A stretch of 64,000 nt of DNA, taken from Zygnema circumcarinatum SAG 698-1b. Lineage: Eukaryota; Plantae; Zygnematophyceae. This document shows, in pieces, positions 6,352-64,000 of the stretch. The notes beneath the pieces were generated by a model, which was given only the letters and a program-made list of their open reading frames with translations, was not told the DNA's origin and did not search any database. Both the position numbers and the translations under genes were made by a program. The stretch is from the NCBI GenBank assembly GCA_037447605.1, contig CM074810.1:124001-188000 (forward strand). Reading direction: 5' to 3'. How positions within the stretch are numbered: position 1 is the stretch's first letter; every line of letters starts with the position of its first letter.

Positions 6352-11369
<5,018 letters not shown>

Positions 11370-24100: not shown

Positions 24101-26335
24101 CCCAAGCCGGAGTGGCGCACTCTGATGGACATGATGTGCCAACGCGCAACGGAGGAATACAGGGATGTGGTCTTCAGAGACCCCCGCTTTGTCAACTATT
24201 TCCGAAGTGTGAGTCCACTGTGCCTCCCTATCCCCCCCCTCTTCCCCCTCTACTTCTCTCCTTCCCCTTCTCCCTCTCTCTCCCTCCCCTTCTCCCTCTC
24301 TCTCCCTCCCCTTCTCCCTCTCTCTCCCTCCCCTTCTCCCTCTCTCTCCCTCCCCTTCTCCCACTCTCTCCCTCCCCTTCTCCCTCTCTCTCCCTCCCCT
24401 TCTCCCTCTCCCTCCCTCCCCTTCTCCCCCTCTCTCCTTCCCCTTCTCCCTCCCCTTCTCTCCCTCTCTCCCTCCCCTTCTCCCTCTCTCTCCCTCCCCT
24501 TCTCCCTCTCTCTCCCTCCCTTTCTCCTTCACTCTCCCTCCCCTTCTCCCTCTCTCCCTCCCCTTCTCCCTCTCTCTCCCTCCCCTTCTCACTCCCTCTC
24601 CCTCCCCTACTCCCTCTCTCTCCCTCCCCTTCTCCCTCCCTCTCCCTCCCCTTCTCCCTCACTCTCCCTCCCCTTCTCCCTCTCTCTCTCTCTCTCCCGC
24701 CCTCCTCTTCAAGGTAAAGGGTGCTGAAGGCAGGGCAGGGTCTCCTTGGCTGTGCAGGCCACTCCGGAACAAGAGTACGGTCGCATGAATTTGGGCAGTC
24801 GCCCCTCCAAGCGTAAAGCAAGCGGCGGAATCGAGTCTCTCCGAGCTATTCCATGGATTTTCGCATGGACGCAGGTCCCCCTCACTCCCCCTCCCCCTCC
24901 CTCCCTCTCTCCCCCCCCCCCCCCCCCCTCATTTCCCCTTCCCAAACTTTCTCACCCAAGTTCGCTGCATTCCTGACAATTCCATTCTGCTTGAAATTGG
25001 AATGCAGACGAGATTCCATCTTCCGGTGTGGTTGGGCTTCGGAGCAGCCATCCGCTCTGCCTTGGAGGCGGACCCCAACAATTTGGCAGTCCTGAAGGCT
25101 ATGTATGCGGAGTGGCCGTTTTTCCGTGTTACCATCGATCTCATAGAGATGGTGTTCTCCAAGGGAGACCCCCGAGTGGCTGCGCTCTACGACCGCCTGC
25201 TCGTCCCCGGGGACCTCAGGGAATTCGGAACAGGCCTGCAGATTAAGTACGAGGAGACCAAGGCCCTCCTTCTACAGGTACAGTACCTCCTCCCCCCTCT
25301 CTGCACTTCATCGCCCTCTCCCTCTCCCTCTCCCTCTCCCTCTCCCTCTCCCTCTCCCTCTCCCTCTCCCTCTCCCTCTCCCTCTCCCTCTCCCTCTCCC
25401 TCTCCCTCTCCCTCTCCCTCTCCCTCTCCCTCTCCCTCTCCCTCTCCCTCTCCCTCTCCTCTCCCTCTCCCTCCCTCTCTCCTCCCTCTCCCTCTCCCTC
25501 CCTCCCCTTCTCCCTCACTCTCCCTCTCCCTCTCCTCTCCCTCTCCCTCTCCCTCTCCCTCTCCCTCTCCCTCTCCCTCTCCCTCTCCCTCTCCCTCTCC
25601 CTCTCCCTCTCCCTCTCCCTCTCCCTCTCCCTCTCCCTCTCCCTCTCCCTCTCCCTCTCCCTCTCCCTCTCCCTCTCCCTCTCCCTCTCCCTCTCCCTCT
25701 CCCTCTCCCTCTCCCTCTCCCTCTCCCTCTCCCTCTCCTCTCCCTCTCCCTCTCCCTCTCCCTCTCCCTCTCCCTCTCCCTCTCCCTCCCTCTCCCTCTC
25801 CCTCTCCTCTCCCTCCTCCTCTCCCTCTCCCTCTCCCTCTCCTCTCCCTCTCCTCTCCTCTCCCTCTCCCTCTTCCCTCTCCCTCTCCCTCTCCCTCGCC
25901 ACTCTCTCCTCCCTCTCCTCTCCCTCTCCACTTCATGGTACTGCACAAAGCACTGCGGAACTGCAGCATAGCCCTGTTCCATGTGAAGAGCGGCTGGGTC
26001 TCTAACTGTAACTGTAACTGTGACTGCAACTGCGGCATGTGTTGGGGGTGCAGGTGGCGGGGCATGGCTCGTGTTTGGAAGCAAACCCCACTCTGCGGCA
26101 GCGGCTGTCTGTGCGCGAGCCGTACATCACCCCTCTGAACGTGCACCAGGCGTACACGCTCAAGAAGATGCGGCAGCCGGCGCAGCCCAAGGAGCTCCCT
26201 CCTGCGAAGGGGACCGTCACCAAGTCTGCGGATGTGGTGTCGTTGAATCTGACTACGGAATACGCGCCGGGATTGGAGGACACTCTAATTATTACCATGA
26301 AGGGAATTGCTGCAGGCATGCAGAATACGGGCTGA
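18684..26335 (+). CDS. PPC: Plant-type phosphoenolpyruvate carboxylase, 982 aa, 14 exons
   Basis: Exons 18684-18917, 19160-19316, 19805-20036, 20220-20304, 20784-21006, 21559-21662, 21824-21914, 22051-22205, 22332-22655, 23042-23573, 24066-24208, 24758-24874, 25008-25277, 26054-26335 (2949 nt, in frame). Motifs [55 protein letters not shown]-terminal QNTG. Confidence 0.97.
21019..21122. repeat. (GA)n microsatellite just after a PEPC donor
   Basis: Seen directly. Confidence 0.9.
22650..22955. repeat. 60-bp tandem repeat, ~5 copies, spanning the PEPC exon 9 donor
   Basis: ATTAAG|GTGAGAAAATGG recurs with GT at 22656, 22720, 22780, 22840, 22900. Confidence 0.92.
24230..24700. repeat. Pyrimidine-rich minisatellite, PEPC intron 11
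   Basis: Repeating CTCCCCTTCTCCCTCTCTCTCC blocks. Confidence 0.85.
25315..25930. repeat. (CCCTCT)n hexamer tract, last PEPC intron
   Basis: Seen directly; gives SP/GE/RG-repeat ORFs. Confidence 0.95.
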
Positions 26336-30438: not shown

Positions 30439-33291
30439 ATGGACGCGGCGTGGCAGGCTCTCGCAGTTCGCCACGTGGCCATCGCCATGGAGGCAGAGGC
30501 GTCGCCCTCCCGTAGCCACGTGGCGGCCTCTGACGCTGCCACCTGTGACGTGTTCCTCAGCGATGTCCACGTGGCATGCCACGACGACACTGCTTCCTGT
30601 TCTCGATTCACGTTCTACCTGCCACGTGGCAGCAGCTCTGCAGAGGAGGATGACGACACGTGGAAGGAGGGGAGGGAGGAGGGACACGTGGCAAGTGCTG
30701 CTGGGCAGAGGGTACGTCTTTCTGTTGTGCCTCTATGGGGAAATGTAGGGCGCTCCCATCTCCCCCTTCCGTCTCTCCCTCCTCACCGCGCCCCTCTCTC
30801 CCAAGTCTCCACGAGTTCATCATGTGGGCAATCGTTTTTAGGGTTTGTTTCATAAAGTAGAATAAATCAGTAACTCTAATTAAAGCTTTCCACACAATAA
30901 TAATTAATCGTTTTAATACAGTTATGATACCTCTTCAGGATGAGGGCCCGCCAGACCCACTTCTCCCTGCTCCGACGCGGCACATGGAAGAGCGTTCAGT
31001 TCTGGAACTGAAAACTGACGAGCATGGCGACCTGATTGTTCCACGAGGCAGAATGCGAACAAATGGAGAAGGTCAGCTCAGAACTCGCCCATAAGTTCCC
31101 CTCCTCTGGCCACTTATTTCACCTTCTGTAGGGAATTCTTTCTCAATCCTCCTTCCTTCCACGTTTACTTTATTTATAATTTTGTATTTGGATCCTTCCA
31201 GACCCCATTTCTAGGAAAAGGAAGTACGGCATTGTTGTGCAGCATTCCATGGCTACCCCTTTGCCGCTTGTGGGTCTCCAGGCAGGTCATCCCCTGCACA
31301 CCCCAATCCCTCTCCGTTCCTCTCTCTGCTGCTCGCTGTATCCCATTCTTTACATCCCTCTCTCGCTCTCCGTCTCTCTTCCCTTCCTCCCCCCCCCTCC
31401 CCCCCCCGCCCTCCCACCTCTCCTTTGCTTGCTTTACTCCCCCTCCCCCCCTCTCGCTGCCACCCAATCTCTCGTCCCCTTTTCCTCCCAATCCCCCCCT
31501 ACTCTCCCACTCTCTACCTTCCCCTCCTAAGTATTGCATTCTCAAAGTGAATCCTCAAGCAAGTCTGAACTTGGCAGTGACAGCTGCAATCACTTTCTGT
31601 TCCTCGTTTTTCCTTGATAGGTTTGGCGTGGAGCACTCCTATTGGCTGATTTCATTCTCCAGCACATGGAAAGGTGGCGCCATGTGACCGCCCTCGAGCT
31701 CGGCGCAGGTACAGGTGGGAGACAGGGCTGCTCTGCCACGTGCTGCGTTATGATTGGTTGTAGCTGCTTTCTCAATCAGAATAACTCGTTGTTCTACCAC
31801 AGATTTGCCCTTGCTAGTTTGCAGTTTCTTGTGTTGAACCGCCGTTTTCCAGTTGCAGAGTTCATGGCTTTAGGTAGTGGTGGCAAATTTCCTACCGAGG
31901 GCGTCTGAACTACTTCCCGGTTTTCAGTAGCCGTTGCAAATCTCCTAGCGATAATGCTAATTCGAAAGTAGCAGCAACATACTCATAGCAGAACGAACTT
32001 CGCCACCCCTTCATTTAGGGTCTTATAAATATTAAGGTGCGCGTCCGCAGGGCTGGCGGGAATTGTTATGGCTCGGGCAGCCCGGCGGGTGTTCATAACC
32101 GGTAAGGGTCGTGTCCGCCCTTCTCTCTCTCTCTCTCTCTCACTCTCTCTCTCTCTCGCCCCCCTCGCGTGCGCCATCACCTCGCTTCTTCTCTGTTATA
32201 TTCATTTGTCTTTTGTTCTCTCCTCTCCTCTCCCACTCACACTCGGGTCGTCGGCACTTCTGCAGACGTAGGTGAAGAAGTTCTCGATAACTGTGCTCAT
32301 AACGCAAACGCAAATACGCAAACTCTTCTAGCCAATGACATGTCTCCACATCATTCTCCCATAAAAATACGATCTCTCGACTGGACGGACCCCTGGCCTC
32401 CTACATCTTCGTCTTTCCACAAAAAAGACCATACGTTTAAGCTTCATTCAGAGAGAGGGGTGAAAGGAGATGCTCAAGAGGAGGGAGGCGATAAGGCGGA
32501 AGTTTGGGGTTCAAAATGTTGCTCGAAATCTCTGGAAACTATGAATGAAGAGGGGGTTAATGTTCGTCGGAAATATGGTTGGAGTGAAGAAGATGTGAGA
32601 GAGGCAAGCGAAGCTAGTGTTCTTCTCGCTGCCGATGTTGTTTATTCTGAGGATCTCACAGAAGCATTTTTTGGATTACTGCGTCAACTGATGCCTCGTG
32701 GGAGTGACAAGGTGAGGAAGGATTGAGCTCGCCTCTGTCTCTCTCTCTCTCTCCCTCTCCCTCTCCCTCTCTTTCTTCCGTTCCTTTACCCCCCTTCCCT
32801 CCTCCTCCCTCCCTCCCTCTCCCTCTCCCNNNNNNNNNNCCTCTCCCTCCCCCCTTCCCTCCCTCCCCCTTTCCCTCCCTCCCTCCCTCCCTCCCTCTCC
32901 CATCTCCTTTAAGATTGCCCTCACGTTCTGCCTCATTCAGGTCCTGTACATCGCTCTGGAGAAGCGCTACAACTTCACAATGCGTGACTGTGACGTCACG
33001 GCCACCGGATATGCCCATTTTCGGACCTTCTTTCGCGAGGCCGCCGACTGGCACAGCGAGGAGGAATGTGACTTTATCGGGAGGAGGGTCCCGTGCTCGG
33101 ATGTGCCTCAAGCCGTGGAGGAGTACGAGAGGGGCGAGGACTTGGAGCTGTGGGAGGTTAGGAGCACGCCCCTCGGTAGAGTCAGTTCCACATCCTCTGG
33201 CGAGTCCGGCTTGGAGCACAGCTTGCAAGAAGGAGGAGGGCTCAGGGGGGCTACGCGCCTTCCATGTTCAACACGCGCAGCTTGCACATAG
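30439..33291 (+). CDS. METTL22: METTL22-like class I protein methyltransferase (Methyltransf_16), ~475 aa
   Basis: Exons 30439-30711 (start could be 30487), 30939-31071, 31202-31281, 31621-31714, 32051-32101, 32266-32711, 32941-33291. VGLQ|VWRGALLLADF, LELGAGTG, LLAADVVYS, YIALEKRYNF, EYERGEDLELW. Confidence 0.88.
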
Positions 33292-48132: not shown

Positions 48133-48232
48133 NNNNNNNNNNNNNNNNNNNNNNNNNNNNNNNNNNNNNNNNNNNNNNNNNNNNNNNNNNNNNNNNNNNN
48201 NNNNNNNNNNNNNNNNNNNNNNNNNNNNNNNN
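48133..48232. other. 100-N scaffold gap (10-N gaps also at 2305, 10041, 32830, 56113)
   Basis: Runs of N; the 10-N gaps all lie in GA/CT tracts. Confidence 0.99.
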
Positions 48233-48305: not shown

Positions 48306-50232
<1,927 letters not shown>

Positions 50233-52089: not shown

Positions 52090-55000
52090 CTACGCGGAAT
52101 CCTCAAAGCCCATTTCATCTCCTTCCGCTTCCGCGCGCAGCATTTCAAAGCGAACCATCTCTATCTGCACATGAATAGGAGAAGGGGGAGAGGGAGAGCG
52201 AGAGGGAGGGGGAGAGGGAGAGGGAGAGGGAGAGGGAGAGGGAGAGGAGAAGGGAGAGAGGGAGGGAGAGGGAGAGGGAGAGGGAAGGGAGAGGGAGAGG
52301 AGAGGGAGAGGGAGAGGGAGAGGGAGAGGGAGAGGGAGAGGGAGAGGGAGAGGGAGAGGGAGAGGGAGAGGGAGAGGAGAGAGAGAGGGAGAGGAGAGGG
52401 AGAGGGAGAGGGAGAGGGAGAGGGAGAGAGGGAGAGGGAGAGGGAGAGGGAAGGGAGAGGGAGAGGGAGAAGGAGAGGGAGAGGGAGAGGCAGAGGGAGA
52501 GGGAGAGGGAGAGGGAGAGGGAGAGGGAGAGGGAGAGGAAGAGGGAAAGGGAAGAGGGAGAGGGAGAGGGAGAGGGAGAGGGAGAGGGAGAGGGAGAGGG
52601 AGAGGGAGAGGGAGAGGAGAGGGAGAGGGAGAGGGAGAGGGAGAGGAAGAGGGAGAAGGAGAGGGAGAGGGAGAGGGAGAGGGAGAGGGAGAGGGAGAGG
52701 GAGGAGAGGGAGAAGGAGAGGGAGAGGGAGAGGGAGAGGGAGAGGGAGAAGGAGAGGGAGAGGGAGAGGGAGAGGGAGAGGGAGAGAGGGAGAGGGAGAG
52801 CGAGAGGGAGCGGGAGAGGGCAGAGGGAGAGGGAGAGCGAGAGGGAGAGGGAGAGAGAGAGCGAGAGGGAGCGGGGAGGGAAGGAAGGGAGAGGGAGAGT
52901 GAGGGAGAGGGAGAGAGAGTGAGAGGGAGCGGGAAGAGGGAAAGGCAAGGGAGAGGGAGAGCGAGAGGGAGAGAGAGCGAGAGGAGCGGGAGAGGGACAG
53001 GGAGAGGGAGAGGGAAAGCGAGAGGGAGAGGGAGAGAGAGAGCGAGAGGGAGCGGGAGAGGGAAAGGCAAAGGGAGAGGGAGAGCGAGAGGGAGAGGGAG
53101 AGAGAGAGCGAGAGGGAGCGGGAGAGGGAAAGGCAAAGGGAGAGGGAGAGCGAGAGGGAGAGGGAGAGAGAGAGCGAGAGGGAGCGGGAGAGGGAAAGGC
53201 AAAGGGAGAGAGAGGACGAGGAAGAGGAGCAGAAAGGGATGGGGGCAGTGGGAGAAAAAGCAGAGCGTGAGGAAGGATAGACGCAGAGGGGGAGGGAGAG
53301 AGCGAGGGAGGCAGCTATCTCCTCGAGCTAATCTCTGCCTTTACAAATTTCACACTTTCTCTTTCCCTCCCGAACGAAAGTAAGTACCTGCTCGTCCGAA
53401 AGCCTCCTTTGGACGGCACTGAACAGAAGCTTCCTATTGGTCTGCGGGCTGCCAGCTGTCCGTCCGTACAGAGCTGCCACGTCAGCATAGGCGTGCACCT
53501 GCACCGAGAGCCCCGCCCGCGCGAAGGTCTCCGCCAGAGCCGCCTCCTTCAAAGGCCCGCCCCAAAACCCTAATTTTGTCACTTTTTTTTTTCCGGCATT
53601 CATAATAAAAAAAGAAATAGCATCAAAATAAGATCGTTCCCCAGTCATGGCGGAGGGTTCGGAAGCTTCCGCGCACCTGCTCGCGGTCCTCCCCCTCCAC
53701 CTGCAGCGCGCCACGTGGCAGCTCTCCAGCGAATAGCGAGCCTTCCGCGGCCAGGCTGCTGACGTGGCCGAGGACCCCCTGCAGGCCCGCCGCCGTGACC
53801 CCCTCCAAGTCCTGCCCCGCCCTCGGCCCTCCAAACCCTAAAAATCCGAAACAGCCCTAAAGCTTGGGAACATTCAAACGACAGCAATGCTGAAGGCCCT
53901 GAACCCTCCAAAAACCCTCGCATGCTCAGAAACCCTAAAGTAGCCAAAACCCTAGGATCCGTACACATCCTGGCATCCCTCAAACCCTAAAAGCCCCAAA
54001 ATAACCTAAACTCCCTACACAGCAGAAACCCCCCCCCTTACATCCTACACTCCGGGATGTCTATAATAACCTTTAACAGTCCTCCAAACCCTAAACCCTA
54101 AACCCTGAAACCCTAAAACATAAAACCCTAAACCCTTGACCCTAAACCCTAAAACCCTAAACTCTAAATCCCTAGACCCTACACCCTACAACCCTAAACC
54201 CTAAAACCTAAAACCCTAAACCCTAAACCCCTAACCCTACACCCTAAAACCCTAAAACCTAAAACCCTATAAACCCTAAAAACCTAAAACCCTAGAACCC
54301 TAGAACCCTAAACCCTAAACCCTAAACCCTAAACCCTAAACCCTAAACCCCTGCAGAGCGGGCCCCACCTGCAGCAGCCAGAGGCTCGGGCGGTCCCCGC
54401 GGAGGCCCATCCTCCGAAGCTTCTCGCCCCACCCCTCGTCCCGCCAGTCCACTCCGAGCGCCACGTCAGCGCTGACGTGGCGCAGCAGGCAGCCTCGGGG
54501 CGTTTTAGCGCCGACACCTGTCCGCCACGCTCCGTTGGAATCGAAAACAGTACAGCGGTTAGGGTTTGGACAAGGGTAGCGAAGTACGGATATCTATTTA
54601 CTCGAAATAATTTCAACTTTGTGCTTTTTTTTTTCTTGTGTCCTTCCGTTGGGCAGTTTTAGGGTTTTGCAGTTCTCAGAACCTTTCAGGATGTCGGCCG
54701 CGAGGCCGTACACCTCCACGGGAGACACGTCAAAGAGCCGCATGGAGGCCGGCCATGGCAGACGGTACGGCCTCGTGTCCATGCCACCTGTCAGCAGCAC
54801 AGCCTGCCACGTGGCATTATATCAATGAGAGACACACACATACACAGTTCTCCTTGTCCTCCTCTCCCTCTCCTCTCCCTCGCCCTCTCCCTCCGCTGTT
54901 ACTCCCTCTCTCCTCTCCCGCTCCTCTCACTCTCCCTCTCCCTCTCACTCCCCCTCCGCTCTCACCCCCCCTCTCCTCTCCCTCCCCCTCTCCCTCCCCT

Positions 55001-57225
55001 CTTACCCCCTCTCTCCTCTCCCGCTCCTCTCACTCTCCTTCTCCCCCCCTCTCATTTCTCCTCTCCTTTCCCTCTCCCTCTCGTCTCACTCTCCCTCTCC
55101 TCTCACTCTCCTTCTCCCCCCCCTCTCATTTCTCCTCTCCTTTCCCTCTCCTCTCCCTCCCTCTCCCTCCCTCTCCCTCTCCTCTCCCTCCCCCTCTCCC
55201 TCCCCCTCTCCCTCCCCCTCTCCTCTCCCTCCCTCCTCTCTCCTCTCCCTCTCCTCTCCCTCCCCCTCTCCTCTCCCTCCCTCTCCCTCCCTCCCTCCCT
55301 CTCTCCCTCTCCTCTCCCTCCCTCTCTCCCTCTCCTCTCCTCTCCTCTCCTCTCCCTCTCCTCTCACTCTCCAACTCCCTCCCCCTCACTTCTCCTCTCC
55401 TTTCCCTCTCCCTCTCCTCTCACTCTCCCTCTCCCTCCCCCTCTCACTGCCCCTCTCCTCTCCTTCCCCTCTCACTCCCCCTCCCCTCCCCCTTGCCCCT
55501 CCCAGTACTGGGAGACAAAAGAACAAAAGCAGAATCTCTTCAACAAAAGGACCGAACAGCGAGGGCTGAGCGCCGCCTTCACCTGCCTCCCCTCCGCCTC
55601 TTGCCGCCCCGCAAACTCTAAAATTAGGTCATCCAAAAACCGCGTGGCTGCCACGTAGGACTGTGCTGACTCAGCATCGCCCGCCTCGGGATCCATCCCC
55701 TCCGCCATGGCTGCCGCAAAGGGGTCATGAAAGAGCGCATCTGCAGATTTTTTTTTTTTTTTTTTTTTTCAGCAAACAATAGTTCAGTGCTTAAACTATT
55801 TCTTTACGAAGTTTAATCAGAACTTAGATTTTTTTTTTTTTTTTTTAATGAGGGTGTAAGCCGGGGGTGTAAGGGGGGGCCTCCTGACCGGATCGGAGGC
55901 TCTCCTCCTCTCTGAGGCGCGCCGCCCTCCGCGCGTCGACGATTTGCCGCCGATCGCTGTCAGCCGGCGCGGCTGCAGTTCCGTTTTCCGCTGAAAATTC
56001 AGTTTCGCGTATTGAATGAGAAAACTAGCGATAGGTGAGTTAATGGGGCTGAACGGGAGAGGGGAACGAGAAGAGGGAGGGAGTGGGGGGTTGGGGTGGG
56101 AGAGGGAGAGGGNNNNNNNNNNGAGGGAGAGGGAGAGGGAGAGGGAGAGGGAGAGGGAGAGGGAGAGGAAGAGGGAAAGGGAAAGAGGGAGGGAAGGAAG
56201 CGCCAACAGACCCCAAGGTTAACCTTTAGGCGGTGGATCCCGACAAGGGGATCTGAGGATGAACTGAATGCCCACCGTTTCCCGTTGATCTCAGCGCCGG
56301 AGGGAAGCTGCTCGTTGAAGCGCTGCCTCCAATTCCGAACGCAGCGCACGAGCAGGCTCCTGCCTGGAGGAAGTAAAGAAAACTTCAAATGCTCCGGTAA
56401 AGAAAAAATATCCTTAACGATATCAAATTCTACAGCTCAAATAATTACTTAATTTCAATGTTTGAGCGGTTAAATTTAAAATCATATTTTGAAACCCTAA
56501 TAACTCATCGTCCACCCTAGATCCTAAAACCATCATTTCCAAAACCCCATATTGGAATGAACGTCTTAGACTCTAAACCCTAAACCTTAATCCCTAAACC
56601 TTACACTGTACAGCCTGAACCCGACCCAACGCCTAAACCCTAATCCCTAAAACTGAATCCTAACCCTAACCCTTGCCGTAGTTATAAATCCTAAACCTTA
56701 CAAACAAACCCTAACCCTAATCCCAAATCCTAACCCTAGAACCTAGACCCTAAGCCGAGGGCCTAGACCATCATTTCCTCGGCCTATGTTTGAATATAAG
56801 CCCAAATGTCAAACCCTGATATCCAACCGTACAGCATAAACCCTAACTCTTAAAAAGAATCAAGCATGCGTCCACCTCCGTCTTCTGCTCCCCCCATCCC
56901 CCTGAACCCTAAAACCTAAACCCTAAACCAAGAAATCCTAAAAATGTAAACTGAAATTGGATTTTTTTTTTTTTTTTTAAATGGTGTTCACCTTCGCTCG
57001 ACCTTGAAGCTCTCCATTTGTCCTCCTCCTCCCGACTGCCACGTGTCCGCGTGACCGCTCCCCGCTCCTTGCGTTCCGTATGCGTTGGTTCGTCAGTCTA
57101 GTACCACTGAACTGCGGACGGAACTGAAAGTCTGACAGCGCCATGGATCCGGCCCACAGGTCGCTCCCCGACGCCAAACTTTGAACAGAGAAAGCCGGAA
57201 CCGAGACGGTGACCCCTGCCATCAT
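52090..57225 (-). CDS. Plastid-targeted LCM-family SAM-dependent methyltransferase (At4g02405-like)
   Basis: Well-supported exons 55972-55889, 55740-55583 ([16 protein letters not shown]), 54803-54683 ([12 protein letters not shown]), 54517-54369 ([24 protein letters not shown]), 53811-~53676, ~53540-53388 (QRRLSDEQ), 52164-52090 ([11 protein letters not shown]). Transit-peptide exons near 57225-57000 and 56370-56260 have uncertain boundaries. Confidence 0.82.
52175..53215. repeat. (GAGAGG)n tract plus longer purine-rich units, last LCM intron
   Basis: Seen directly. Confidence 0.92.
53830..54350. repeat. Interstitial telomere-type repeat (CCCTAAA)n in LCM intron
   Basis: About 6 perfect units at 54305-54350, grading into degenerate units toward 53830. 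Confidence 0.92.
54850..55500. repeat. CT-rich low-complexity tract, LCM intron
   Basis: Seen directly. Confidence 0.85.
56470..56945. repeat. Degenerate CCCTAAA/CCCTAA telomere-like array in first LCM intron
   Basis: Many AACCCTAA(A), CCTAAACC and ACCCTAG variants. Confidence 0.7.
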
Positions 57226-57336
57226 TATTATTTTGTCATACACGCCCTCGCTCTCTGTCGTTTCGCGGAGACTTTCGTAGGAATTTAATACGATAAAGTA
57301 CATGTACGGCCATTCGACGATTCGACAATATATCTA

Positions 57337-58266
57337 GGGTAGTGATATTTCCACCCCTTTTTTGGATCCAAACACCCCTTCCCGGCCGGGCAGATTTCAA
57401 AAGGGATTAAAAACGGAAAATGCTTTTTTCACACCTTTTTGGAATCGATACCCACCTTCCATCGGCAGATTTTATTTTTGCGAAACAAGAAAAATGATAA
57501 CCCGTCACCCCATTTTGAATATCCCGCCTACTTGAATTTCTTTTCACGCGTGCGGTCAATCGCAGCCGTCGATTCCCTCGCAGATCGCAACATGGCAGAT
57601 CACTATTTGATCTGCACCGGGCTCGGTCACAGCGAATGGCAGGTGCCCACGTATCCCGCCAAAGTCGCCTCAAAAATTGTCCGTACAAATATCGTACGGT
57701 CGCAACTTTGAGGAACCCAAAATTTCGTACATTGAGAGCTTGGACCAATCAAAATTTTCCACGTCAAAACTGCAACACGTGGCAGCTGTTGATTGGCTGG
57801 GAGGTAACAATGACGAGATCTCGGGCCGAAAGACGCGCGCACTCGCACCTGCGATCCGGCTTTGACGGGACTCGTGGGCGCTTTCCATTCGCTAAGATCG
57901 AACGGTGACCTGCAGTGGTGCGATCTGCGTGGGAATCGACAGCTGCGATTGACACACACGTGTGAAGGACGGACTCCCGCGAACGATCTCGTGGCGGACG
58001 GATTTTCCACTTCGATCGGATTCGGGCTGGCAGATATTTTTTTCCCTCAAAAAAAAAATTCAGGGAGGCGGGATACAGTATTCAAAATGCAGTGATGGGT
58101 TATCATTTTCCTTGGTTAGCAAAAATAAAATCAGCCGACGGAAGAAGGTGGGTATCGATTCCAAAAAGGTGTGAAAAAAGCATTTTCCTTTTTTAATCCC
58201 TTTTGAAATCTGCCCGGCCGGGAAGGGGTGTTTGGATCCAAAAAAGGGGTGGAAATATCACTACCC
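57337..58266. mobile_element. Non-autonomous foldback/MITE element, ~930 bp, long TIRs, TA flanks
   Basis: Outer ~79 bp (57335-57413) is an exact reverse complement of the right end (~58190-58268); imperfect match continues ~200 bp, with an inner block 57552-57602 vs 57906-57965. TA|GGGTAGTG...CACTACCC|TA. No transposase ORF. Confidence 0.88.
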
Positions 58267-60873
58267 TATAACTAGATTCTGCACGTGCGGATTTGTACGC
58301 GTGTCACTGTACAGGTACATCCCGTGGGTGCCGTACGTTTCCGTCGCCTAGCAGAGCAGGCTGACGTGGATCCTGCCGACGCACGTGTGATAATATGTAC
58401 GGCACCAATCAGGTGACGCGCGCGTCTTTTGCAGGGCAAAAACGACGCCTTAAGCACTTTCTCAGATGTTTCGAGCGACGCCATGAGATGACGTCAGCAC
58501 GATGCATGTGATGCTGGCGATTGTTTGACAATGGAACATAAACCACTTGTTGGATTGGAGTCCATTTTTTTGTCCTGCCCGACCGTTAGCCTCGTGCGAT
58601 TTCATCCTCCGATTGGCCGCCTTCACGGATGGACCGCACCGAAAAAATCCTGCCGGGGGCCGGGGCCGGGGTCGGCGGATCCCGTGTGGTACGGACCGAC
58701 TGACGGCCAATAGGAGGCAGCCCCCACTGCCTCCCCTGCGCTCTGATTGGTGAAGGTCTCGTGGTTTCGGCCCTCCCGCTTGACCGTCAAGCCGCATACG
58801 TGCGGCTCGTATATTGCACGCGTGATCCGTACAGGAGGCACGTAATGTCCAAGCCGCGTTGGCATGGAGTGGCGTCATCTGCGTCACGCGCGTGACCAAC
58901 ATTTGCCGCCCAGGTCGCTAAAAGTCGGTGGGCGGCAACTGGAGCCTTCTGCCAGCTAGCAGGATACGTGGCAGACCGTACATTCACTGCCTGTAAAGCC
59001 GAAGAGGTTGAGAAAGTTGGGAAACGAGTTTAGTTGATTTCTGAATTCTCAATGTTATTAAATAGGGTTGAACTTTGAACTCTCGAAGTAAATTGTTTTT
59101 CGATTTGAGAAAGCGAAAAGCTTAAAATAAAAATTCACAGACTCAACATGTTCGTCGCACCTGTGGATTCCATTTTTGCAACGTTGGTTCTGTACAATTT
59201 GAGGGATCTGGTTAACCCGGGCCGATTTTGTTGTTCGTACGACTGTCCGCGCGAGCCGATCAACAATTTTCTTCACTAAAAAGCAGGTCCACGAGCTTTG
59301 CCATCCGCTAAAATCTCATTGTTGATCAGTGGGGACCCGACAAAAACTCAAACAGTAATTAATCGTTCAGCATTCAATTGGTTCTCCATATTGAGAAAAT
59401 AATTTAGAAATTCATTTCTCATTTCTCAAAATGAATCGTGTTCACAAATATATGGTTTCTTTATAAGAATCTGGTTTTGAAGGTATTTTTTTTTGAGAAG
59501 CTCAAATCTTAAATTTCTTTTTTCTCAACCTGTCTGGTTTTACGGGTACTTGTCGTTTTATTCAAGTGGACTCGAAAGGAAAAATTGTTCGTCATGTTCG
59601 TACATTGCTTTGTCTGTTTTCTACTACAATCCACCGCGTCGCCAAGTCAGCCACCACATACGACAAACAATATGTCCCGTCGGTATGCCGCAAATCATCT
59701 CCGAATCCCATCCCACGTGCGCAATATTGTCGTACCCACTGCGCGATTCCTGGGCGGCAAAAGTTGAAATCCACTTCAAGATCCTCACCCCTCAACATGT
59801 TATTACCTGCCCGGACTTCCCAACGGTCCCCCGTCCCGTCTGCTCCGCCAATGAAATTCACCGATCATTCCTCGGGCAGCACCAAAACATTCCGACCTCA
59901 AAACCAAGCGGACCGTACGGTTGGCACGACAAACACATTTGTCGCGAGCCCCCCCGTCCGTACGCCCTCCGGTCGGCCCATCCGCTCCCTCCCAGAGCCC
60001 AGTGCGACTGTACGGTCAGGCTCTGTACCTTCCTGTCATTTCGTACGTTGTCCGTACGGTGTACTACTGTACAGCGAATTCGTGCCGGGTGTACGGACGC
60101 GCTGCGGCGCGGCGCGGGGCGGCCCGGGGGAGAGGGAACGGGGCCGGCGGGGAGGGAGGGAGAGGGAAGGAGGGAGGGAGAGACGGGCGGGGCTCAGGGT
60201 TCAGGGAGGGGAGGGGGAGAGGGCGAGGTGGGGAGGGGGAGAGGGGAGGAGAGGCACGAAGGAGGGAAGGAAGGAGGGAGAGAGGATTCAGGGAGGAAGA
60301 GAGGGCGGGAGGGAGGGACTGGCGAGAAGGTGAGGGAGTGGTGGGGATGATGGGGGGGGGGAGGCTGTATGCGTCCGTGCATTCGGGCATGTATGGGGAG
60401 GCAGGTGCATGGGTTATGGGTAGGGGGAGGGAGGAGAGGTTTTGGGCGGTAGTGGCGAAGGTGGGGAGGTGGGGCGGAGAGGAATGGCGTGTTCTGATTT
60501 GGGGTGCGCTTTGTTTCTGGTTATGTCTGGGATTCGATTTGGGTTCGGCAAATGTGGTCAGGCATGGGGCTTTCCCTCTAATACAGAGATGATGATTGAC
60601 TTTCCTTCGTATAATTCGAGACATTCGCACACTTTCGACTCGAGTTGTGGCCTTCTAATGCCAATGTTCCATTCCTGCTTTACACACACCCCCCGTCTCC
60701 CCCTCCCCATTCATTTCCATATTCCTCCTCTCCCACTTATTGTGACCCTCTCTCGTCCCTCTCACCGTCCCTCACTTTCTCTCTCCCGACTCCTACCTTC
60801 TAATCCCTTTCATTGATCTTCCTTTCCCTCTCTCCCTTTCTATTCCTCCTCCTCTCCTCTCCTCTCTCCTCTA

Positions 60874-60911
<38 letters not shown>

Positions 60912-61401
60912 TTTTCTCTCTCTCACTCTCTCTCTCTCTCCGCTCTCTCTCGCTCTCTCTCTCTCTTTCTCTCCCTTTCTCCCTCATATTCCTCTCTCCT
61001 CCTCTCTCCCCTCGCTCACGACTCCCGTCCTTGCCGTGGTTGGATGCAGCATGACTTGACCACTCCGCCCCCCATGGCTCACAACCCCTCACGACCAGCC
61101 CTCTCTAAACTTCACTAACTCCACTCTGCTCATAGTACTCGGTGCCGAATTTGGCTCTCCCTCATCTCTCACCTTATCCTTCCATCTCTTTCAACAGTCC
61201 TCTCTTCCTCGTTCCCTCTCTCTCTCTCGCTCTCTCGACCCATTCAATCGTTTCGTAAGATCCAAAACCTTCTTGAAATTTAAAAACGACCCACTTTTCC
61301 AAAAAAGGCCCAAAGCTAGTTTTCGAGTTCCGAGTTTTGGATTCGTGGAACTTGGAGCTTCTATTCGACTTTTCCCCCTCCTCCTTCATCGAATCGAACC
61401 A

Positions 61402-62295
61402 ATGGGAGACGAGAAGGGCGATGAGACGACCAGTAGCGGCGGGACATGTGACGGAGTGACCAGTCCGCACGCGCCAGGTGGCGACACGAAGGGCAGTGCC
61501 GGATCCGGGGGGAAGGCAGCCAATCAGAGGTCGCCAACGTGGAAGGAGAGAGAGAACAACAAGAAGAGAGAGCGGAGACGCCGCGCAATTGCGGCCAAGA
61601 TCTTTTCGGGGCTGCGGGCGCATGGAAACTATAAGTTGCCGAAGGTGGGTCTGTATGAGGTGTGAGGGGAGAGTGAGCTGGGTAGGAGTGAAGTGATAAG
61701 GGTGGTGTAGATGAGGTAGGAATGGGGTGGAAGTGGGTAGTTGGGGTAGAAGTTGTGTATAGATTGGGGCTCGAAATAGGTTAGCCTTGTGGTCGGAATG
61801 GGATAGTGATGGTAGAAGTCGAAGGAGCAGTAGAAGGAGAAGTAGAAGGAGAAGTAGATGGAGTAGTAGAAGGAGAAGTAGAAGTAGAAGTAGAAGTAGA
61901 AGTAGAAGTAGAAGTAGAAGTAGAAGTAGAAGTAGAAGAAGAAGTAGAAGTGGAAGTAGAAGTAGAAGTAGGTTAAACATGGGGTGTTTATTGTGATACA
62001 TTGGAAAACAAGAAATACGGTGGCAGAGATGAAGATGGACGGTGGAGATGTGGTAGATTGAGGTAGAGTTGCATGCAAATGGGGTTCAGGTGAAACGTTG
62101 ATTGTGGGTGGTGCAATTAGAAGAGTGAAAGGGAGGGAAGTAATGATATGATTGCTGTCGGTCTCACACGTTTTCCCTTATGTTTCGGTGTTCCTTTTTC
62201 CCTCTTCGTGGCAGCACTGTGACAATAACGAGGTTTTGAAGGCACTCTGCGCGGAAGCAGGCTGGATGGTGGAAGAGGACGGGACCACCTACAAG
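61402..62295 (+). CDS. BES1/BZR1: BES1/BZR1-family transcription factor, DNA-binding-domain exons, copy A
   Basis: Exons 61402-61644 and 62215-62295: [37 protein letters not shown]|[27 protein letters not shown]. Confidence 0.93.
61830..61970. repeat. (GTAGAA)n hexamer in BZR intron; second copy ~63270-63405
   Basis: Seen directly; source of the poly-L, YF and RS ORFs. Confidence 0.9.
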
Positions 62296-62843
62296 GTAAG
62301 GCAGCCTCTCCCCCTCTCTCTCTCTCTCTCTCTCTCTCACGCGGGCCCCCTCCCTCTCTCTCTCACTCTCTCTCTCTCTCTCCGCTCTCTCTCGCTCTCT
62401 CTCTCTCTTTCTCTCCCTTTCTCCCTCATATTCCTCTCTCCTCCTCTCTCCCCTCGCTCACGACTCCCGTCCTTGCCGTGGTTGGATGCAGCATGACTTG
62501 ACCACTCCGCCCCCCATGGCTCACAACCCCTCACGACCAGCCCTCTCTAAACTTCACTAACTCCACTCTGCTCATAGTACTCGGTGCCGAATTTGGCTCT
62601 CCCTCATCTCTCACCTTATCCTTCCATCTCTTTCAACAGTCCTCTCTTCCTCGTTCCCTCTCTCTCTCTCGCTCTCTCGACCCATTCAATCGTTTCGTAA
62701 GATCCAAAACCTTCTTGAAATTTAAAAACGACCCACTTTTCCAAAAAAGGCCCAAAGCTAGTTTTCGAGTTCCGAGTTTTGGATTCGTGGAACTTGGAGC
62801 TTCTATTCGACTTTTCCCCCTCCTCCTTCATCGAATCGAACCA

Positions 62844-63731
62844 ATGGGAGACGAGAAGGGCGATGAGACGACCAGTAGCGGCGGGACATGTGACGGAGTG
62901 ACCAGTCCGCACGCGCCAGGTGGCGACACGAAGGGCAGTGCCGGATCCGGGGGGAAGGCAGCCAATCAGAGGTCGCCAACGTGGAAGGAGAGAGAGAACA
63001 ACAAGAAGAGAGAGCGGAGACGCCGCGCAATTGCGGCCAAGATCTTTTCGGGGCTGCGGGCGCATGGAAACTATAAGTTGCCGAAGGTGGGTCTGTATGA
63101 GGTGTGAGGGGAGAGTGAGCTGGGTAGGAGTGAAGTGATAAGGGTGGTGTAGATGAGGTAGGAATGGGGTGGAAGTGGGTAGTTGGGGTAGAAGTTGTGT
63201 ATAGATTGGGGCTCGAAATAGGTTAGCCTTGTGGTCGGAATGGGATAGTGATGGTAGAAGTCGAAGGAGCAGTAGAAGGAGAAGTAGAAGGAGAAGTAGA
63301 TGGAGTAGTAGAAGGAGAAGTAGAAGTAGAAGTAGAAGTAGAAGTAGAAGTAGAAGTAGAAGTAGAAGTAGAAGAAGAAGTAGAAGTGGAAGTAGAAGTA
63401 GAAGTAGGTTAAACATGGGGTGTTTATTGTGATACATTGGAAAACAAGAAATACGGTGGCAGAGATGAAGATGGACGGTGGAGATGTGGTAGATTGAGGT
63501 AGAGTTGCATGCAAATGGGGTTCAGGTGAAACGTTGATTGTGGGTGGTGCAATTAGAAGAGTGAAAGGGAGGGAAGTAATGATATGATTGCTGTCGGTCT
63601 CACACGTTTTCCCTTATGTTTCGGTGTTCCTTTTTCCCTCTTCGTGGCAGCACTGTGACAATAACGAGGTTTTGAAGGCACTCTGCGCGGAAGCAGGCTG
63701 GATGGTGGAAGAGGACGGGACCACCTACAAG
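62844..63731 (+). CDS. BES1/BZR1: BES1/BZR1-family transcription factor, copy B (downstream exons outside window)
   Basis: Exons 62844-63086 and 63651-63731, same protein sequence as copy A. Confidence 0.93.
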
Positions 63732-64000
63732 GTAAGGCAGCCTCTCCCCCTCTCTCTCTCTCTCTCTCTCTCTCACGCGGGCCCCCCCTCCCTCTCTCTC
63801 TCACTCTCGCACCCCTCTCTCTCTCCCTGTAGGTGTGTGTGTCTGTACGTTTCTTCTTTGATTCGTTCTTTTAAAGAGTAAGGCCCTTTACCTCCTCCTT
63901 CACACGTTCCTCACACTCCCTCCTCTCTCCCTCCTTCGCTCTTGCCCTCTCTCTCCAGTGCCCCTCTCCCCCCAAACGCGCGCTCTCAGACGCTCCCAAG

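Follow-up and report, generated by a model that had tools for sequence, protein, structure and literature searches.

Near its end, the 64,000-nucleotide stretch of Zygnema circumcarinatum DNA that we analyzed (hereafter the window) holds two head-to-tail copies of the 5' region of a BES1/BZR1 transcription factor gene, and the two copies do not differ by a single substitution. We lean toward the view that this is a false assembly duplication of the 5' region of a normal single-copy BES1 gene, for which we put the chances at somewhat better than even. The arrangement could be read as encoding a protein with two DNA-binding domains (DBDs), but we consider an assembly error, or else a duplication of very recent date, the more likely explanation.

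Structure and coding content of the two units

A preliminary description of this DNA had reported two units of about 1.44 kb that differ mainly in microsatellite length and are joined in a CT tract, and pairwise alignment bears this out. Unit A (60926-62360) and unit B (62368-63798), both on the forward strand, align with 0 mismatches among 1,429 aligned nt, and they differ by three changes in length. Three blocks make up the alignment, in which 60926-61873 matches 62368-63315, 61880-62345 matches 63316-63781, and 62346-62360 matches 63784-63798. The first of the two indels between these blocks is 6 nt long, a single GTAGAA unit present in copy A (61874-61879) and missing from copy B, and the second is an extra 2 nt in copy B, where a C7 run at the start of intron 2 takes the place of the C5 run of copy A. 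The third difference emerged from a comparison of the boundaries and lies at the unit start, which reads (CT)6 in A and (CT)7 in B. All three are slippage-type length changes, affecting one homopolymer and two microsatellites, and two of the three fall no more than about 30 nt from the edge of a unit. The repeat periods between the units are 1,442 and 1,436 nt. Unit A starts about 476 nt ahead of the ATG and extends through exon 1, intron 1, and exon 2 to the 65th nucleotide of intron 2; unit B is the same except for the length differences.

The units begin and end in simple-sequence DNA. CT-rich microsatellite tracts were identified by TRF at three places within 60852-63825, namely at 60852-61008, 62306-62450, and 63742-63825, the first and the last described here on the forward strand. 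The upstream tract contains the left boundary of unit A, which lies at the 16-nt motif TCTCTCTCTCACTCTC. This motif bounds the units throughout: it is found just before A, at the junction of A with B, and at the end of B, after which unique sequence starting with CGCACCCC begins. Upstream of 60926 and 62368, the copies are alike only by their CT microsatellite. The junction region (62296-62367, forward strand) runs from the start of intron 2, with the C5 run that is C7 in B, through the 16-nt motif to the start of unit B, with its (CT)7 as against (CT)6; the join itself lies inside the CT tract, where the sequence is contiguous and free of any N run. The downstream tract belongs to intron 2 and has the end of unit B inside it. 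Self-comparison of the 64-kb window revealed no other long repeats outside low-complexity DNA except for an inverted repeat of about 210 nt and a direct repeat of 129 nt. Transposon-mediated copying was also considered as a source of the second unit and was rejected: the boundaries consist of simple CT tracts that share microhomology over 16 nt, and they carry no terminal repeats or target-site duplication.

Each unit contains two exons that match the BES1/BZR1 family. Exon 1A (61402-61644, forward strand) comprises 81 codons from the ATG to a donor at AAG/GTGGGT and encodes the N-terminus, the basic region, and the first helix of BES1_N. It is followed by intron 1A (61645-62214, forward strand, GT..AG), in which TRF and the alignment place a (GTAGAA)n array (61812-61971) with one more unit than its counterpart in copy B. 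Exon 2A (62215-62295, forward strand) lies between an acceptor at GGCAG/ and a phase 0 donor at AAG/GTAAGG, and its 27 codons, ending in TTYK, complete the crystallized DBD. The corresponding exons of copy B, also recognized through Pfam, are exon 1B (62844-63086) and exon 2B (63651-63731), both on the forward strand. Exon 1 matches positions 2-42 of the Pfam profile PF05687 (BES1_N) with an E value of 4.6e-20 and 73 bits, and exon 2 matches positions 43-69 with an E value of 1.7e-15 and 58 bits. These values are identical for the two copies, both exons exceed the gathering cut-off of 25 bits, and the two matches are contiguous on the profile. In the 439-residue MBP-BZR1 construct (PDB 7VN2 and 5ZD4), chain positions 367-437 are matched without a gap by residues 38-81 of exon 1 followed by residues 1-27 of exon 2, the latter accounting for chain positions 411-437. 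The HCDNN and KALC cysteines, which are the equivalents of the conserved Cys63 and Cys73, are present in each unit, as is the basic RERRRRA stretch. By these alignments, each unit encodes the whole crystallized BZR1 DBD, including both conserved cysteines.

The window stops at 64000, about 270 nt past exon 2B, and the remainder of the BES1 gene lies beyond it. An acceptor scan points to a weak candidate start of exon 3 at CAG/TGC..., CPSPPKRALSDAPK (63959-64000, forward strand), and this putative exon has no match in the protein collections searched. Upstream of the BES1 gene are about 5.6 kb without recognizable coding sequence. An ORF fragment with an LCM-family methyltransferase domain is located at about 54.6 kb on the opposite strand.

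Assembly error or young duplication as the source of the second copy

If the duplication is false, the genome would hold a normal BES1/BZR1 gene whose 5' region and first two exons, with the intron between them, occupy a single 1.43-kb stretch. CT tracts that share the 16-nt motif flank this stretch at either end, and the assembly would have written it twice. A scaffolding, gap-closing, or loop-resolution step would probably have joined the downstream CT tract to the upstream CT tract. Two independently built consensus copies of one DNA stretch would thereby have been laid head to tail, and they would therefore differ only where consensus calling is weakest, that is, at a homopolymer and two microsatellites. 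There would be no double-domain protein, and the gene would consist of exon 1, exon 2, an intron that starts at the CT tract, and a remainder beyond the window.

Several properties of the duplication are as expected for such an error. In addition to the lack of substitutions in 1,429 nt, every difference between the copies is a length change of the type that arises by error, and the proximity of two of the three to a unit boundary likewise favors a faulty join. The C5 and C7 runs are among these differences, and a short homopolymer seldom mutates and is often miscalled; by ordinary mutation, a change there before any substitution in about 2,900 bases would be very unlikely. The window contains four 10-N gaps (at 2305, 10041, 32830, and 56113), and all four lie in GA/CT-rich low-complexity tracts, so the assembly breaks and rejoins at sequence like that of the CT-tract junction. 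The 64 kb contain five gaps, so contigs are on average only about 10 kb long. SPAdes was the assembler for two of the three Z. circumcarinatum assemblies, which were scaffolded first with Platanus-allee and afterwards with HiRise (PMC11096116). Comparison with related loci points in the same direction: among 56 related BES1 loci on metagenome contigs, none of them from Z. circumcarinatum, exon 1 and exon 2 never recur within 6 kb, and the two are contiguous in all 56.

Other observations weigh against a false duplication. The junction is contiguous and has no N run, and the true N gaps of the window are not flanked by duplicated sequence, which we looked for as a sign of unmerged contig overlaps. 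An assembler would normally merge a perfect overlap of 1.43 kb, and 16-nt microhomology at the boundaries is also expected from replication slippage or unequal exchange. Furthermore, the assembly runs unbroken through arrays of 0.7-1.3 kb at other places in the window, which makes it probable that long reads were used; reads of that kind could resolve a true duplicate. The identity of the copies, the type and position of their differences, the anatomy of the junction, and the placement of contig breaks can all be read directly from the DNA, and from them we infer that the join is most likely technical in origin.

The same features can be accommodated by a real, very young partial duplication with little or no new function, which we regard as a possible but less probable origin of the second copy. 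The promoter-proximal region would have been copied, together with exons 1 and 2, when the two CT tracts underwent unequal exchange or replication slippage at the shared 16-nt motif. Copy B, with its own upstream sequence of about 476 nt and the rest of the gene, would then make the normal protein, and copy A would be a 5' gene fragment. Transcripts of copy A would end, be degraded, or be spliced past copy B, the target being exon 2B or exon 3; with both exons in phase 0-0, either route would keep the frame. The contiguous, N-free junction and the microhomology at the boundaries are consistent with this scenario. So is the location of two of the length changes, as no sites here mutate faster than the (CT)n and (GTAGAA)n arrays, which would diverge first. 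Two suitable acceptors, the genuine one of exon 2B at 63651 and the candidate one of exon 3 at 63959, are available downstream of the donor. A young duplication is less readily reconciled with the C5 to C7 change, which is unlikely to have arisen as an ordinary mutation in the absence of any substitution in 2.9 kb and would have to be explained by a sequencing error or as a side effect of the duplication itself. It also leaves the boundaries coinciding with the typical break sites of the assembly.

Were the second copy an artifact, the matter would be a practical one: BES1 gene counts would come out too high, or a spurious two-domain or truncated model would be annotated, in a genome used for tracing the origin of plant hormone signaling. 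The locus would then need flagging. Were it real, it would represent an ordinary young partial gene duplication, of interest only if the in-frame fusion is expressed.

Reading frame and relatives of the proposed two-domain protein

The preliminary description had suggested that, if the duplication is real, transcripts of copy A could be spliced from 62295 to 62640 to yield a single-chain tandem BZR dimer, or else that copy A alone gives a short, DBD-only competitor; it also named a false assembly duplication, the reading that we favor, as a serious alternative. We give either product very little credence. The arithmetic behind the proposed splice is nonetheless sound. Exon 2A was said to end in phase 0 at 62295, which it does, and exons 1 and 2 both begin and end in phase 0. 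The 204-nt leader was said to be open to the ATG, and the 68 codons at 61198-61401 and their counterparts at 62640-62843 are indeed free of stops. An acceptor-like AG was also correctly placed before each leader: TTTCAACAG with a pyrimidine tract is found at both positions, the copy A candidate occupying 61190-61198 on the forward strand (exon start 61198) and its copy B twin having an exon start at 62640, as judged from the sequence and an acceptor scan. A 62295-62640 join would be in frame, as had been calculated, and its product would read DBD A, a 68-residue linker derived from the former 5' leader, the N-terminus, DBD B, and the rest of the protein.

Thus, two DBD units lie on one strand and could be joined in frame, each with the complete crystallized domain and both of its conserved cysteines, and the 62640 acceptor has a pyrimidine tract of 80% followed by CAG. 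The BZR1 DBD is known to bind DNA as a dimer (PDB 5ZD4; PMC12668046), which also speaks for the proposal. The leader is C/T-rich and stays open in 7.7% of composition-matched shuffles (p of about 0.08), so that its open frame is close to chance, and the 68-residue linker that it would encode has no match in the protein collections searched. The frame upstream of the exon 1A ATG is in fact open from 61060; a coding extension upstream of the ATG was rejected, since this longer frame has no in-frame ATG and no homolog.

Splice site competition is a further difficulty for the proposed fusion, for which 62640, the twin of 61198, is a candidate acceptor. Six AGs downstream of the 62295 donor (62578, 62640, 63651, 63833, 63877, and 63959) follow a 20-nt stretch in which pyrimidines make up at least 70%. 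The first of these, at 62578, precedes 62640 and is out of frame, with a stop after 40 codons. The genuine acceptor of exon 2B at 63651 is in frame with the 62295 donor and would compete with 62640. In addition, copy B could be transcribed on its own from the roughly 476 nt upstream of its ATG, and a fusion also requires the duplication to be real.

We also looked for proteins of this kind in large sequence collections. One was a set of 5.8 billion clustered proteins, searched by word index with the leader plus exon 1 and with alignments with the exons as separate rows; the other was a set of 1.84 billion cluster representatives, searched with HMMER. Each set stands for about 15 billion predicted proteins. 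Neither search returned a BES1 protein or transcript of Z. circumcarinatum, with one domain or two. Neither returned any protein more than 67% identical to exon 1; therefore, the Z. circumcarinatum BES1 is absent from those collections. The top match in every search was the 381-residue Mesotaenium endlicherianum protein ME000214S03267, which is 67% identical over residues 11-81. This is a zygnematophyte BES1 that shares part of the N-terminus outside the domain (the GGTC motif). It differs in having a single DBD and in a gene model that lacks the VLKALC...TTY part of the domain, an omission that is probably an annotation error.

The best 150 of the 1.84 billion representatives in the HMMER search each have a single matched stretch and thus are all single-domain. 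Three clusters scored approximately double in the word searches, each with two BES1_N matches; all are angiosperm gene models, and none is algal. The soybean (Glycine max) protein KAH1218302.1 and its relatives have two BES1_N matches in one predicted chain, as the proposed algal protein would, but these models of 653-678 residues are two neighboring full-length genes merged into one that other annotations keep apart. In Brassica cretica KAF2593375.1, the first 83 residues repeat at 173-257 with 95% identity, giving a layout that resembles the proposed algal tandem, and the partial model RDX68770.1 of Mucuna pruriens, also with two BES1_N matches, has a similar layout. The two DBDs are about 90-100 residues apart in both. 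Their existence as database models favors the double-domain proposal to some extent; each, however, is a single-sequence cluster from a draft assembly, and these nearest analogues may themselves be products of assembly or annotation. A phrase search of the literature turned up no paper on a BES1 protein with two domains.

Considering the frame, the acceptors, and the searches together, a spliced double-domain protein or a domain-only inhibitor appears unlikely. That the alga makes a BES1/BZR1 protein with two complete DBDs and about 110 disordered residues between them, a natural forced dimer caught soon after its birth, strikes us as highly improbable.

Comparison with known systems

The DBD of Arabidopsis BZR1/BES1 (PDB 5ZD4 and 7VN2-7VN8) is the closest structural reference for the algal units, which share with it a gap-free alignment over the domain, the RERRRRA stretch, and both cysteines. 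The algal gene differs from the Arabidopsis genes in having an additional intron directly after TTYK. Its C-terminal regulatory part, where one would look for GSK3/BIN2 sites, a 14-3-3 site, and an EAR motif, or for a BAM7/8-type beta-amylase domain, lies beyond the window.

A fusion, if it were expressed, would be a natural single-chain dimer of a transcription factor that otherwise binds DNA only as a dimer, and it would show domain duplication at a very early stage. The parallel is with engineered tethered bHLH dimers such as MyoD~E47, in which two dimerizing DNA-binding domains connected by a flexible linker can act as a forced dimer. Those proteins are laboratory constructs from a different fold family, and the parallel is relevant only if a BES1 fusion transcript exists.

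The filaments of zygnematophytes are haploid. The false assembly duplications analyzed by Ko et al. were, in contrast, mostly driven by haplotype differences in diploids, and they were diagnosed by read depth and linked reads. In their cases, as would be so at the BES1 locus if our favored reading is correct, adjacent near-identical copies add false exons or genes to an assembly. The joins that they describe lie at gaps, or where a gap had been filled wrongly (Ko et al. 2022, PMC9516828).

Sequence gaps and repeat arrays in the window

The window contains four gaps of 10 N each (2305-2314, 10041-10050, 32830-32839 and 56113-56122), all of which lie in GA/CT-rich low-complexity tracts, and a single gap of 100 N (48133-48232) that is surrounded by ordinary sequence. 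This pattern suggests that scaffolding was done in two stages and that contigs break at purine/pyrimidine microsatellites. Imperfect purine/pyrimidine-rich arrays of 0.5-1.3 kb are found at 706-1197, 6658-7940, 8492-9201, 25286-25934, 48498-49155 and 52183-53315. When the window was compared with itself, some of these arrays proved to be 92-98% alike over distances of tens of kb and in either orientation, examples being the likeness of the array at 8.5 kb to that at 48.5 kb and the inverted match of the array at 0.7 kb. The arrays may represent a dispersed satellite-like family.

The region upstream of BES1

The closest recognisable gene upstream of BES1 appears to be a divergently oriented ORF fragment on the minus strand (54597-54821) that matches leucine carboxyl methyltransferase (LCM, PF04072; E 1e-7). 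Also upstream of BES1, in intergenic sequence, is an inverted repeat of approximately 210 nt, the arms of which (57335-57544 and 58051-58268) are 91% identical and spaced approximately 500 nt apart. The same ORF-like text can be read on both strands, and the repeat resembles an element of the foldback or MITE type.

BES1 in other genomes

Two single-sequence database models, from Brassica cretica (KAF2593375.1) and Mucuna pruriens (RDX68770.1), each carry two BES1 DNA-binding domains separated by approximately 90-100 residues, with internal repeat identities of 95% and 85%, respectively. Both models could be products of assembly or annotation of the same kind, or else real partial duplications. 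The public model of the single-domain Mesotaenium endlicherianum BES1 (ME000214S03267) passes directly from HCDNNE to GTKPSG and lacks the VLKALC...EEDGTTY portion of the DNA-binding domain, probably reflecting an exon boundary mis-called where BES1 in the window has an extra intron, directly after TTYK. Among related BES1 loci from metagenome contigs, matches to exons 1 and 2 directly adjoin in 56 of 56, with no intron between LPK and HCD in any of them, whereas BES1 in the window is interrupted at this position by a 570-nt intron (61645-62214, plus strand).
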